The notes under the pieces were generated by a model that saw nothing but the letters and a program-made list of their open reading frames with translations, searched no databases and was not told the DNA's origin. A stretch of DNA of 64,000 nt from Blepharisma stoltei ATCC 30299 (taxonomy: Eukaryota > Protista > Ciliophora): contig CBFDEM010000021.1 of assembly GCA_965603825.1 (NCBI GenBank), positions 186,001 to 250,000 of the forward strand. The letters are read 5' to 3'. Both the position numbers and the translations under genes were made by a program. This document shows positions 30,958-34,963 of the stretch, piece by piece; within the stretch, counting starts at the first letter, position 1; every line of letters begins with the position of its first letter.

Positions 30958-32229
30958 TTATAATCTTAATATTGGTATCCTTGACGGTCTTTTCTCTTTT
31001 ACAGGCCTTGCAGGCACTTTTACAACTGGTTTTACTGTAGTTTTTTGCAAATATTTATCAAAATCTATCAGCGCGCTTTCTTCGATTCTGAGATTCTCTA
31101 ACGAAGAATCAGTCAGAATTTGTTTTTCTGCAAATTCTAGCTTGTTGCTTAACAAATCTTCTTCTTTTATATGCGATTTCAAGCTCATTGATAAAGATTT
31201 AGCATGCTTTCTTGGCGGTATCTGGAGTAATTTTTTACTGCTCAGCATTGTGCTGTTTATTTCCTGATTTAATTTGGCAAGTCTATTATTATAAGACTCG
31301 ACCTCGCTTGACCCAGTTTCTACATCTTCAATATTATAGGACGGAGAAAGTAATGCGGATAAGTTGCCTGATCTGCAGGTTGAAGGAATTTCAAGCTTTA
31401 TTTGTGTATTGTGTTTTGGCTTACTTCGGAATAATGGATTAGATTTATATGAGTGATTCTGCACAAGCTCTGTTGTGAATGATAAAAGAATAAGAATTGC
31501 TTGGTTTCATTGCTCTGAACGGAGAAGTTCATTGAAATGGTTGGGATATATGTTTGACTTAGCGAATAATAGACTTATATCATGGTTTTTTTGGATTTCG
31601 TAAATCATTTTGCTGCTTTTTTCTATAATTTCGGTATATATTAAGGGGTTTTCATCTGATAATGTACAGCTATTGCAGTTGCTTCTGCTGTTTTGAAGAT
31701 CATCTTTTAGCGCGCTGTTTGTTTTCATTAATTTTTTTCATATTTTCTCCTTTTCTCCTTTTTCTTTACTGTAGAAGCTTTTTTCTAAATTTTGAATTTG
31801 CTCTTTTAATCTTCCAATTTCTTCATCTTTATGTCCTATAACCCTTTTCAAATTTTCAAAATCATCGAAAATTGCATTTATTTTTTCCATTTTCACCTCA
31901 AGTTTATCTTTATCTTTTGAAACTTGCTCCAAAGACTTCACCAGCTCACTATTTTTTCTCTCAAGATTTTCATAAGAAGAAGCAAGTGTTTTTAAAGCAT
32001 TTTTAAGCTTTTTTTTATCAGATCTTAATCGAGATATCACGTTTCTTGCTTTAGCCATGTCATTATGAATATTAACTAAAAATTCTTTCTCTACCTCTGA
32101 ATTGTTTAATTTTCAAGTGTCGCTACTTCTATCTTTATCCATCAAACTTTCTGACAGCTTCGTCTTTAAAGAGTTAGTATCTGAAGGTGACCTAAGGTGT
32201 ATGCATGAGTAATGCCTTCCTTTTTGCAT
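30958..32229 (-). CDS. Hypothetical coiled-coil protein, 423 aa
   Basis: Three ORF-track fragments form one frame with 3 TGA=Trp. Confidence 0.8.
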
Positions 32230-32290
32230 TTAAATTGGTTTGTTAAATAATAATTTACAAATAGAAAAAAATAGCGCTAAATAGAGCAAG

Positions 32291-33268
32291 ATGACAACAC
32301 AAATTCTAAACGACGGTATTGATTTTTTTAGGGAGAAATTTGTTGGGTATCTTACCTTAACTTTGAAAGAGAAATATGGTTCTCAATGGATGGATTGTGC
32401 TTTAAATCCTCCAGGTCAAGATTCATTAATGTCAGGAAGAAAGAACTCAGAGAGATGGGATATACAGTTTTCCTCACAAATATTTCATGCTCATTGGGAT
32501 TCTCTTTACAAAGATAAAGTTGATGGCAAATTCCCCAAAGCCTTGATGACATTAATAAAGTTTTATAGAAATGAGTGAGCTCATCAAAGCGCATTAGGGA
32601 ATAGAGAAGTTTATAGAGCGATTGATGCAATGCAATGAATGCTAGAATCACTTAAAGTTGACGCAGGATTACTAGAAAACAGCAGAAATAATTTAATGCT
32701 AGAAATGTGCAGACAAAGCCCATATCTACAAATGGAAGCAAAAGTAAAAGCTGATAATAGCGCAGCAAAAATTTTGTCTCACAATCGAAGTGATCCTAGA
32801 AAAATTCAAGCTGAAGTCAAGCCTGCAATTGAGACAAAAAAATTGACATATACAATTATAGATAAAGCTCCAGAAGAAAAACGAGAAATTTATGACATAA
32901 AAGAAATTAAAAAACAAGTTGAGCCAATTTATTATGTCCCTCAAAATCAGCCAATTGGAATTGACCAAACACAAAATTTAGCACACCAAAATATTTATGC
33001 AAACATAGGATCATATAATCCTACTATGTCTACGAGTCAGCCTTTAGTTTTTACATGTATGGCTTGCAGCAGTGCAATTAACGAGACTCAAAAATATACT
33101 TGTTATGGTCATAACTGCATAGTATGCACTAATTGCTTGGTGAAAGTGTATCAATATCATGGCGTTTTTGCTTGTCCAAGATGCCAAACTCCTTTGACTG
33201 AAAACGATCAGCAATACTTGCAAAGCCTTTTTAATGCTAACTATCATGCTAACTTTTATGAAAAATAA
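32291..33268 (+). CDS. Swt1-like HEPN domain + C-terminal RING-like zinc finger, 325 aa
   Basis: WDIQ...HWDSLYK...FYRNEW(TGA)AHQ...EVYRAIDAMQW(TGA)MLE; CMAC...CYGHNCIVCTNC...CPRC. Confidence 0.8.
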
Positions 33269-33292
33269 TAAATAAGCATTGAATTTATAATT

Positions 33293-34843
33293 TTATGCGC
33301 TTTCTTCACTACTTTCTTCAGCTAAACTTTCGTCTTCACTACCCTCAGTTGATTGAGAATTCTCTTCGCTATTCTGCTCAGTTGTGCTTGTGTCAGTTGA
33401 AGAGCTATCTACGGCCTCTTCTTCTTCTTCACTTTCTGTGCTTTCAGTGCTTTCAGTGCTCTCAGTGCTCTCTGTGCTTTCTGCTTGCTCTTCTTCAGAC
33501 TCCTCTTCTTCACTGCTATCTTCTGCTGATACTGAATCTGCTCCTGTTTCTTCCTCTTCGCTAACCTCAGCGTCTTCATCGGTAGCAGTTTCTGCTGTAT
33601 CTTCTTCAGCACTTTCTTCATTTGAATAATCAACTTCATCTGCAAGCTCAATTGCTTCATCAATGGTGTTTCCAAGATTATCAACACTTTGTGAAAGCTC
33701 ATTGATTTCTTCTGTTAAATGCTCATCTGCATCTTCCAAAGACTGCAAAATAGCATCTTCATACATATCGATTTCTTCATTGACTGTATCGGTCCTATTC
33801 TGAATTATTTCACTTGTCTCGTCTGTCACTGTTTCTGTTGCTTCATCCCATAATGCTTCCTGGAAGTCTTTTTCATCTTCTGTTTCAGCTTCATACAGCA
33901 TATCAACATCTTCTGCTAGTCCATCCAAATTATTTTCCACGTAAATATCTTCAGGCTCTGTGTCAAGTCCAGCCTGAGCATTATCCAATATTTCTTCTTT
34001 TTCATCTTCAAGTCCTTCTATTTTAGTCTCTATAACAGCTTTATCTTTTTTTAGGTCATTTATTTTACTTTCTAAGTCCTGGACTTTTTCCGATTCCGAA
34101 TCTTCACTACTATAATAACTCGTCGAGTCCCCTGATGAGCTTGACTGTACAGGACACTCGCTTTGTGACTCTGAATCCGCATGATAATAAAATGAGGGAT
34201 GGCAGCTTCCTGTATCTTCCCCAGTCCCTACAAGGCAATAATATCCATTTTGACACCATCCACAATTTGAATCCAACAAGCAACTAGAGCAGCTTGTATA
34301 CCCATCACATGCATCATTGGCGCATTCCCCATACTCAAAGCTCTCACATTCTTCTTTATCAGGCCCTGAAGAGTCTCCATCCACACAAAGCTGCTCAGAA
34401 CTGCACCATACACAGCTTGTAAAAGCAGTGCACGCTGAGCATGACGTGTATTCGTCACAGTCTTTTTTATATTTTTCAAGTTCTTCTTCTAGCTCATCTA
34501 TATCGTGATTAATTCAAAACAGCTCATTTTCAAGATCTGAAATTTCACCATCAATTAAAGATGTAGAGAGCTGTGCATTCATGGTGATGGTAGAATCAAG
34601 CTGGTCATTTGTTGATTTTATTGCTGAGTCCAGCTGTACTGAAAGATCTGATAAGTTTTCATTGACTTTTTCAACACCGTCTGCAAGTTTTCCTAAGCTT
34701 GTTTTTGGTTCATATTTAGAAGACGTTTCTGAGGTTTCTGCTTGTAAAAAAGATAAAAATTCTTGTGGGTTATGAGTAGAGGTGGAAGAAACAAAATATG
34801 ATGCAAGATATAGAATGAGGAGGCATGCTTTTATTGTTTTCAT
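33293..34843 (-). CDS. Secreted protein with two PSI-like Cys repeats, coiled coils and acidic tail, 516 aa
   Basis: Signal peptide MKTIKACLLILYLA; TGA 34514-34516=Trp; CDEYTSCSACTAFTSCVWC and CDGYTSCSSCLLDSNCGWC. Confidence 0.82.
33432..33483. repeat. 9-bp coding tandem repeat (STE)n, about 5.5 copies
   Basis: ctttctgtg ctttcagtg ctttcagtg ctctcagtg ctctctgtg. Confidence 0.85.
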
Positions 34844-34963
34844 AGCCGTTTTATAAATTGGGGTATAAGAAAGAAACATCTTTTAAATCAGGATAGTTTA
34901 TATGATAAATACTTAGGGTTGCTTATGGGTTTATTGAATATTTTTATATAAATTAAATACTAA

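Follow-up and report, generated by a model that had tools for sequence, protein, structure and literature searches.

Within a 64,000-nucleotide stretch of the somatic genome of the ciliate Blepharisma stoltei ATCC 30299 (hereafter the window), we found a gene at 32291-33268 of the forward strand whose product joins a Swt1-family HEPN domain of the motif-bearing type, through a low-complexity linker, to a C-terminal finger that profile searches and a predicted fold identify as a RING. The gene is real and covered by transcript-like contigs, it is intact under the organism's own genetic code (TGA=Trp), and its domain arrangement is kept in two paralogues as well as in several further genomes that are eukaryotic and probably ciliate. 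With a rough probability of 0.6, we read the product as a HEPN (competent type)-linker-RING protein that would act in RNA surveillance or conflict-related RNA cleavage tied to ubiquitin signalling.

The N-terminal domain spans residues 10-120 (32318-32650, forward strand), with a helical core reaching to about residue 139. It matched the Pfam family HEPN_Swt1 (PF18731) over profile positions 3-113 of 115, with 53.3 bits for the whole protein (E 4e-14) and 56 bits for residues 1-140, at a cut-off of 27.5 bits. Searched exhaustively with HMMER, 1.84 billion representatives yielded 106 proteins at E<=1e-3, and across 101 aligned HEPN domains the positions conserved at 90% or more were D57, W69, F73, R93, N94, W96, A97, H98, R109, D112 and L118. 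These include all but one residue of the Rx4H catalytic motif R93-N94-E95-W96-A97-H98 (32567-32584, forward strand), and R93, N94, W96, A97 and H98 are moreover invariant in the eight closest homologues; R93, N94, H98, R109 and D112 are retained throughout the eukaryotic group. According to the 2013 survey of HEPN proteins, the motif-bearing Swt1-family HEPN is the active form, present in bacteria and a few eukaryotes, while the PIN-bearing Swt1 of yeast and animals has lost the motif (PMC3710099).

The predicted structure agrees with this assignment. The AlphaFold2 (AF2) model of the domain has six helices and a predicted local distance difference test score (pLDDT) of 95.7, and its comparison with 48,161 representative chains using VIA-align placed the yeast Swt1 C-terminal domain first (4pqz; Z 9.8, 116 residues, 2.5 A) and the PbAbiF dimer second (8vz6; Z 8.3, 134 residues), followed at Z 6-7 by the HEPNs of Csm6, Cas13, AF_0298, sacsin and Roquin, interspersed among generic helical bundles. 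Foldseek, given the same model, ranked globins at the top with a TM-score of about 0.2, and its sole sensible match was again 4pqz (0.51). The HEPN profile returned only noise from the sequences in the PDB, so that the relation to the Swt1 C-terminal domain and to AbiF is visible by structure only; the 2013 survey had likewise grouped the Abi2 and Swt1 families together (PMC3710099). Both profile and fold thus bear out the first-pass annotation, made from the sequence alone, which had described a Swt1-like HEPN domain with an intact RxxxxH motif; the domain shows the full RN.WAH...YR..D signature that active bacterial versions retain. A Pfam search of the protein reported no PIN family at E<=1, with the HEPN domain starting already at residue 10, and membership in the PIN-Swt1 orthologue group was rejected on that basis.

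The C-terminal finger (33056-33184, forward strand) reads C256-x2-C259-x11-C271-x2-H274-x-C276-x2-C279-x2-C282-x12-C295-P-R-C298 and appears to be of the C3HC4 type, with C256, C259, C271, H274, C279, C282, C295 and C298 as its predicted ligands. In an alignment of ten family members, C256, C259, C279, C282, C295 and C298 were invariant, the columns of C271 and H274 held Cys or His, Pro296 next to the seventh ligand was conserved at 90% or more and C276 was unconserved, giving the family pattern C-x2-C-x11-[CH]-x2-[HC]-x4-C-x2-C-x12-C-P-x-C. Two features typical of ubiquitin ligase (E3) RINGs are kept in the family, the C-P-x-C-x3-[ILF] end and the C-x2-C-[LIM] start of the central helix. Searched against PDB sequences, the ten-member profile matched RING E3 ligases almost exclusively, among them RNF4 (2.8e-8, a value aided by a tandem construct), RNF125 (2e-6), TRIM21 (7e-6), BRCA1 (9e-6) and UHRF2 (1e-5), with further matches to TRIM32, UHRF1, RING1B, COP1 and BRE1; the single finger sequence on its own matched the UHRF2 RING at 6.7e-4. 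With the finger region as sole query, a word-index search retrieved only the protein itself.

Modelled separately, the finger (pLDDT 83) found RING1 of HOIP as its best Foldseek match (probability 0.97), and VIA-align returned HOIP RING1, RNF213, IRF2BP2, HOIL-1, RNF144 and ARIH2 at Z 5.9-5.1, with nearly all of the top 50 being RING or U-box folds. The earlier suggestion that the finger is a RING is therefore upheld by the profile search and the predicted fold, with the Pfam RING threshold missed. A further helix is predicted after the finger, at residues ~304-322 (33200-33256, forward strand; residues 60-78 of the modelled fragment, pLDDT 84 falling to 39), and it aligns with the helix that follows the RING1 domain of RING-between-RING (RBR) proteins; the protein contains neither an in-between-RING (IBR) domain nor a RING2. 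On these sequence and model grounds, E3 activity of the finger is plausible.

The coding sequence comprises 325 intronless codons followed by TAA, and its translation is identical to an entry already present in public protein collections (P0001), which carries W at both TGA positions and a HEPN annotation. Its only in-frame interruptions on the forward strand are TGA codon 96 (32576-32578) and TGA codon 116 (32636-32638). The first-pass annotation had proposed that reading TGA as Trp merges two open reading frames; a single frame does result, and it contains every string quoted there. It had also noted that the standard code would cut the active site in half, and the first TGA indeed sits within R93-N-E-[TGA]-A-H98. 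A six-frame read-through search of the genome scored the HEPN domain at 52.1 bits, and the piece N-terminal to the TGA alone scored 23.8 bits. The aligned residue at codon 96 is Trp in at least 90% of the 101 homologues; at codon 116, which lies in the helix downstream of the motif, two homologues (P0004 and P0006) among the seven closest have Trp. In the homologue genes for which DNA was examined, Trp is encoded by TGG throughout, never by TGA.

The same use of TGA extends through the window, where the summed length of open frames of at least 150 codons rises from 13,292 to 19,146 codons once TGA is taken as sense, and where TGA occurs in frame, together with TGG, in the majority of long frames. 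TGA is thus a sense codon in this genome, in line with the published description of the B. stoltei ATCC 30299 somatic genome as 64 gene-dense, telomere-to-telomere contigs with 15-16-nt introns and UGA=Trp (PMC9942806). The assembly analysed here (GCA_965603825.1) likewise holds 64 contigs, totalling 41,464,486 bases, and the contig bearing the gene measures about 1.23 Mb. Termination at TGA was rejected in view of the conserved Trp position, the transcript-like contigs spanning both TGA codons and the conserved finger encoded downstream of them.

Those contigs, assembled from four public runs of one study, define a transcript-like unit at 32266-33272 of the forward strand. Single contigs cover 32266-33248, 32266-33272, 32266-33265 and 32275-33266 across the four runs, with 0 differing letters and no joints. 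The intergenic stretch at 32216-32265 is uncovered in all four runs, coverage breaks again at the next gene, and neighbouring genes are covered by separate contigs at depths that differ from gene to gene, as in a transcriptome; we regard the contigs as transcript-like because of this gap, these gene-wise breaks and these differences in depth. The unit is unspliced. Its leader measures about 25 nt, its trailer is close to nil, and the finger and the two TGA codons all fall within it.

Searching the whole genome for PF18731 gave exactly three matches, namely the present gene, a gene of 272 aa (C47) and one of 707 aa (C2, P0015), and all three encode a HEPN domain, a low-complexity linker and a finger in that order. 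The same architecture occurs outside this genome, with short linkers, in the metagenomic proteins P0002-P0005, P0007/P0110 and P0021, and two family members are present in MMETSP transcriptomes. In the present protein the linker covers residues ~141-250 (32711-33040, forward strand), matches no Pfam family and is unconserved; its length runs from about 10 residues in P0002-P0007 to about 500 in the C2 paralogue, and we take it to be disordered and free to vary in length.

The metagenomic contigs that carry HEPN-RING genes are gene-dense and eukaryotic, with intergenic gaps of tens of bases and with neighbours encoding a UCH protease, an adaptin, a protein kinase, DHHC, MIF4G/MA3 and EF-hand proteins. 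All stops checked on them (28/28) are TAA or TAG, and their hosts are likely ciliates. Two of these contigs are syntenic (L011:219-8302 and L013:360-7639), sharing a Pkinase gene, a 139-aa gene, DHHC, MIF4G/MA3 on the minus strand and HEPN-RING, and their HEPN-RING proteins are orthologues that fall in different 50%-identity clusters. No synteny was found between the metagenomic homologue contigs and the 64-kb window. We also observed an unrelated zf-RING_2 gene on L011, two genes downstream of the HEPN-RING gene.

Other relatives carry a different C-terminal part. In P0018 and P0063 a Helicase_C-like tail replaces the finger, and the members of a larger AT-rich set (P0009-P0019 and others) have N-rich tails. 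The contig of P0018 (sample 3300059473) holds three tandem HEPN_Swt1 genes of 317, 319 and 315 aa, of which at least P0018 bears the Helicase_C-like tail; here the family has expanded locally and its accessory module has been exchanged. P0010 (L014:481-1710), in which a long tail rich in Asn follows the HEPN_Swt1 domain, is encoded on a contig of 1.9 kb and 26% GC whose end consists of (ATTGGGG)n; a (CCCCAAT)n telomere, of which this is the reverse, has been reported for rumen ciliates (10.1101/2022.01.05.474053). Several P0010-like proteins share a conserved C-terminal ...NVYVH.DD end.

One pattern retrieved at least 589 bacterial loci in species-representative genomes, mostly from Planctomycetota, an excess that stems from the first row of the 12-row bacterial alignment from which the pattern was built. 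The architectures of the bacterial relatives include HEPN-TM-Zn-ribbon, with a transmembrane (TM) segment (17/66), HEPN+DUF499, HEPN+FHA and solos; the nearest are mostly membrane-anchored HEPN-TM-Zn-ribbon proteins and solos, with HEPN+DUF499 in some only. The HEPN-TM-Zn-ribbon arrangement had been noted before (PMC3710099). In Planctomycete-type relatives (P0020 and 16 other bacterial-like relatives; loci L015-L094) the HEPN domain is followed by 1-2 TM helices and a Zn ribbon of near-invariant form, C-x2-C-[RK]-I-[IV]-Y-x4-C-P-Y-C, whose C-P-x-C end resembles that of the ciliate RING, perhaps by coincidence.

Bacterial members score about 120 bits against PF18731, compared with 53 for the ciliate protein. 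In quick trees, all 33-34 eukaryote-like rows fall on one side of a branch of length 0.70 (Shimodaira-Hasegawa-like approximate likelihood ratio test, SH-aLRT, 96-97) with the bacterial rows opposite, and within the eukaryote-like group the nine HEPN-RING rows form a subclade with P0018, P0063 and the truncated P0006 (SH-aLRT 95). The phylogeny and paralogue count that the first-pass annotation had called for therefore yield a separate eukaryote-like side and three copies in this genome. The domain is of bacterial type and its ultimate origin is probably bacterial; its entry is older than the divergence of the sampled ciliate lineages, and nothing suggests a recent transfer into Blepharisma. 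The possible horizontal acquisition raised earlier thus holds in a deep sense only, a recent transfer being contradicted by the supported eukaryote-like group, ciliate codon usage, the 1.23-Mb contig and the two diverged paralogues.

The label of a bacterial-defence-type system found no support. PADLOC 2.0 reported 0 families at E<=0.1 for residues 1-140 of the ciliate protein and for P0020, a Planctomycete protein and its nearest bacterial relative, and HEPN+DUF499 is found in only some of the nearest bacterial relatives. NCBIfam gave no match, and a narrow test of viral contigs with one pattern found no relative. Searched by features, the ESM Atlas returned nothing usable; searched by structure, it returned only a Planctomycete HEPN cluster and generic RING clusters.

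Compared with known systems, the ciliate protein shares its family and its RN.WAH...R..D motif with the active Swt1-like HEPNs of bacteria (PF18731), which comprise the Ava_2192 type with a DUF499 AAA+ module, the HEPN-TM-Zn-ribbon proteins of Planctomycetes and solos (PMC3710099). As in those, the HEPN domain is N-terminal and followed by an accessory module, which binds zinc in some. It differs from them in its eukaryotic host, in having a RING module but no TM segment, no DUF499 ATPase and no operon or restriction-modification context, and in the divergence of the HEPN domain itself, which lies in the separate eukaryote-like group. Active Swt1-family HEPNs have been described in eukaryotes as well, as solos in Naegleria, in dictyostelids and, as an expansion, in Daphnia, and also in apicomplexan aegerolysin-HEPN fusions, and were proposed to be defensive RNases (PMC3710099). 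Compared by description only, these are likewise eukaryotic copies of a motif-bearing, bacterial-type Swt1 HEPN, but they are solos or aegerolysin fusions, whereas the present protein is a RING fusion in a ciliate.

Yeast and animal Swt1 itself, a PIN and HEPN protein of nuclear messenger ribonucleoprotein (mRNP) surveillance, belongs to the same Pfam family and provides the closest solved structure, yet it shares only 11% identity, has the PIN domain that is missing here, and has lost the Rx4H motif that is kept here (PMC3710099). AbiF/Abi2, the second-best structural neighbour, is a dimeric HEPN RNase of a sister family; unlike it, the ciliate protein has no Abi match in Pfam or PADLOC, sits in a eukaryotic context and has no known noncoding RNA partner.

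If the HEPN domain and the RING are both functional, two HEPN domains would pair and their two Rx4H motifs (R93 and H98, together with N94) would form a composite, metal-independent endoribonuclease site. HEPN RNases generally dimerise into such a composite Rx4H site and AbiF, the second-best structural match, is dimeric in 8vz6, and it is from these that we infer dimerisation. The RING would recruit a ubiquitin-conjugating enzyme (E2) and so bring about ubiquitination of proteins bound to the target RNA; alternatively, it may ubiquitinate the enzyme itself and thereby limit a potentially toxic RNase, and it may also, or instead, aid assembly of the dimer. An antiviral or anti-symbiont immune role would be speculation. 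A wider version of this proposal holds that the proteins form an old, ciliate-wide family, with helicase-like and N-rich-tail variants, in which an active bacterial-type HEPN endoribonuclease and an E3 RING would serve as an innate-immunity or RNA-surveillance effector, cleaving foreign or aberrant RNA and ubiquitinating what is attached to it, such that an RNase-plus-ubiquitin logic would have been invented independently of Roquin and DZIP3; this we consider doubtful.

Several points weigh against RNA cleavage tied to ubiquitin signalling. RNase and E3 activity, like the homodimer, are presumed by analogy for every member of the clade, this protein included, and the nearest solved structure, the HEPN domain of yeast Swt1, is seen as inactive (PMC3710099). 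On the side of the finger, Pfam zf-RING_2 stays below threshold (E 0.23-0.27, and 0.0032 for the best family member), ligands 4 and 5 are separated by a spacing of 4 where 2-3 is canonical, and some of the best-matching RING folds (IRF2BP2, TFIIH p44) are non-E3 proteins. Many RINGs use the hydrophobic residue of C-x-[ILV]-C and a basic 'linchpin' beyond the last Cys to engage the ubiquitin-charged E2 (E2~Ub), and both are unconserved in this family. The trees are quick maximum-likelihood trees of 141 columns, with strong differences in amino-acid composition between groups. Finally, the RNA nature of the four runs is a guess, and assembled contigs cannot reveal translation or exact ends.

These weak points of the finger lend themselves to another account, in which the protein is still an RNase and the RING-like finger is a non-E3 zinc module that serves dimerisation, docking or nucleic-acid-binding control of the HEPN domain, much like the bacterial Zn ribbon. 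The poorly conserved E2-contact positions, the atypical ligand spacing, the missed Pfam RING thresholds and the RING folds lacking E3 activity among the best structural matches all fit such a module, as does the C-terminal Zn ribbon ending in C-P-Y-C in 17/66 bacterial-like relatives; moreover, the Helicase_C-like tail found instead in P0018 and P0063 shows that the C-terminal module can be exchanged. However, the profile matches are overwhelmingly to bona fide E3 RINGs, and E3 RINGs typically have such a central helix and a C-P-x-C-x3-[ILF] end; we hold this account to be unlikely. The converse proposal keeps the E3 and gives up the RNase: in a regulatory E3 of the Roquin/DZIP3 kind, the HEPN domain would bind or sense RNA without cleavage and the RING, as the sole catalytic part, would tag RNA-associated proteins. 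RNA-binding E3s with both RING and HEPN do exist, namely the Roquins (PMC4614863) and DZIP3/hRUL138 (Table 1 of PMC3710099), the Roquin N-terminus is among the structural neighbours of our domain (Z 6.8), and the closest solved structure, the yeast Swt1 C-terminal domain, is considered non-catalytic (PMC3710099). Yet essentially all members keep the full RN.WAH together with R109 and D112, as do the active bacterial versions, while non-catalytic HEPNs usually lose the motif (PMC3710099), and no DZIP3 HEPN profile matched at E<=1, which makes a purely regulatory E3 quite improbable in our judgement.

Roquin (RC3H1/2) and DZIP3/hRUL138 also join HEPN to RING and are linked to RNA, DZIP3 with the same N-to-C order (PMC4614863, PMC3710099), but their HEPN domains belong to other families and are confined to the animal lineage, and that of Roquin is a non-catalytic part of its RNA-binding region. 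The HEPN-RING fusions of ciliates and those of Roquin/DZIP3 arose independently. Membership of the ciliate protein in the DZIP3 family was rejected, HEPN_Swt1, not the DZIP3-type HEPN, being reported at E<=1. A third possibility is that the gene came recently from bacteria, that the DNA is a contaminant, or that the TGA codons are true stops in a pseudogene under decay; the abundance of bacterial homologues (at least 589 loci) and their higher PF18731 scores (about 120 against 53 bits) are what could be cited for it. The gene, however, lies within a gene-dense 64-kb ciliate window on a 1.23-Mb contig, uses TGA at a conserved Trp, has transcript-like contigs over its full length, encodes a conserved finger past the TGA codons and groups with eukaryote-like sequences, not inside bacteria. 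We regard a recent transfer, contamination or a pseudogene as barely credible; contamination and recent transfer were rejected on the contig setting, the use of TGA as Trp, the transcript-like coverage and the position in the tree.

In prokaryotic defence, HEPN RNases have a central place as effectors (Cas13, Csm6, Abi and toxin-antitoxin systems), and a few eukaryotic pathways use them as well (RNase L, Ire1 and Las1); ciliates, for their part, have very active genome and RNA surveillance. To our knowledge, the rewiring of bacterial-type active HEPNs in eukaryotes is known from sequence surveys alone. A conserved HEPN-RING fusion would couple RNA cleavage with ubiquitin signalling in deep-branching protists, and because Blepharisma can be cultured it offers a directly testable system. 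Both domains were already known, as were RING and HEPN proteins of other HEPN families in animals, and the gene itself stands in public collections. In the literature searched, the Swt1-like HEPN family is described only in the 2013 survey, which mentions neither ciliates nor a RING fusion (PMC3710099), and the HEPN_Swt1-RING pairing, a small ciliate family, is undescribed. Two annotation blind spots bear on this pairing: the standard code splits the active site, and Pfam misses the RING, so that the HEPN-RING architecture is invisible in domain databases.

The genes on either side of the HEPN-RING gene both lie on the minus strand. The product of the convergent neighbour (window 33293-34882), about 529 residues long, is very acidic, rich in Ser, Glu and Asp, and contains (S-T-E)n repeats. 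Transcript-like contigs of this neighbour run from 33254/33273 to 34835, 2-3x as deep as those of the HEPN-RING gene, and in two runs reach over the last 12-19 bases of the latter; the two 3' ends therefore abut or overlap. The upstream neighbour (window 30981-32215) is a coiled-coil-like frame of 423 codons that contains TGA three times in frame and lacks TGG. The contigs over it are of low depth, and those of runs X2 and X3 differ from it by single letters at several places (31011-31174, 32142 and 32174), owing perhaps to variation between alleles or strains, or to assembly errors at low depth.

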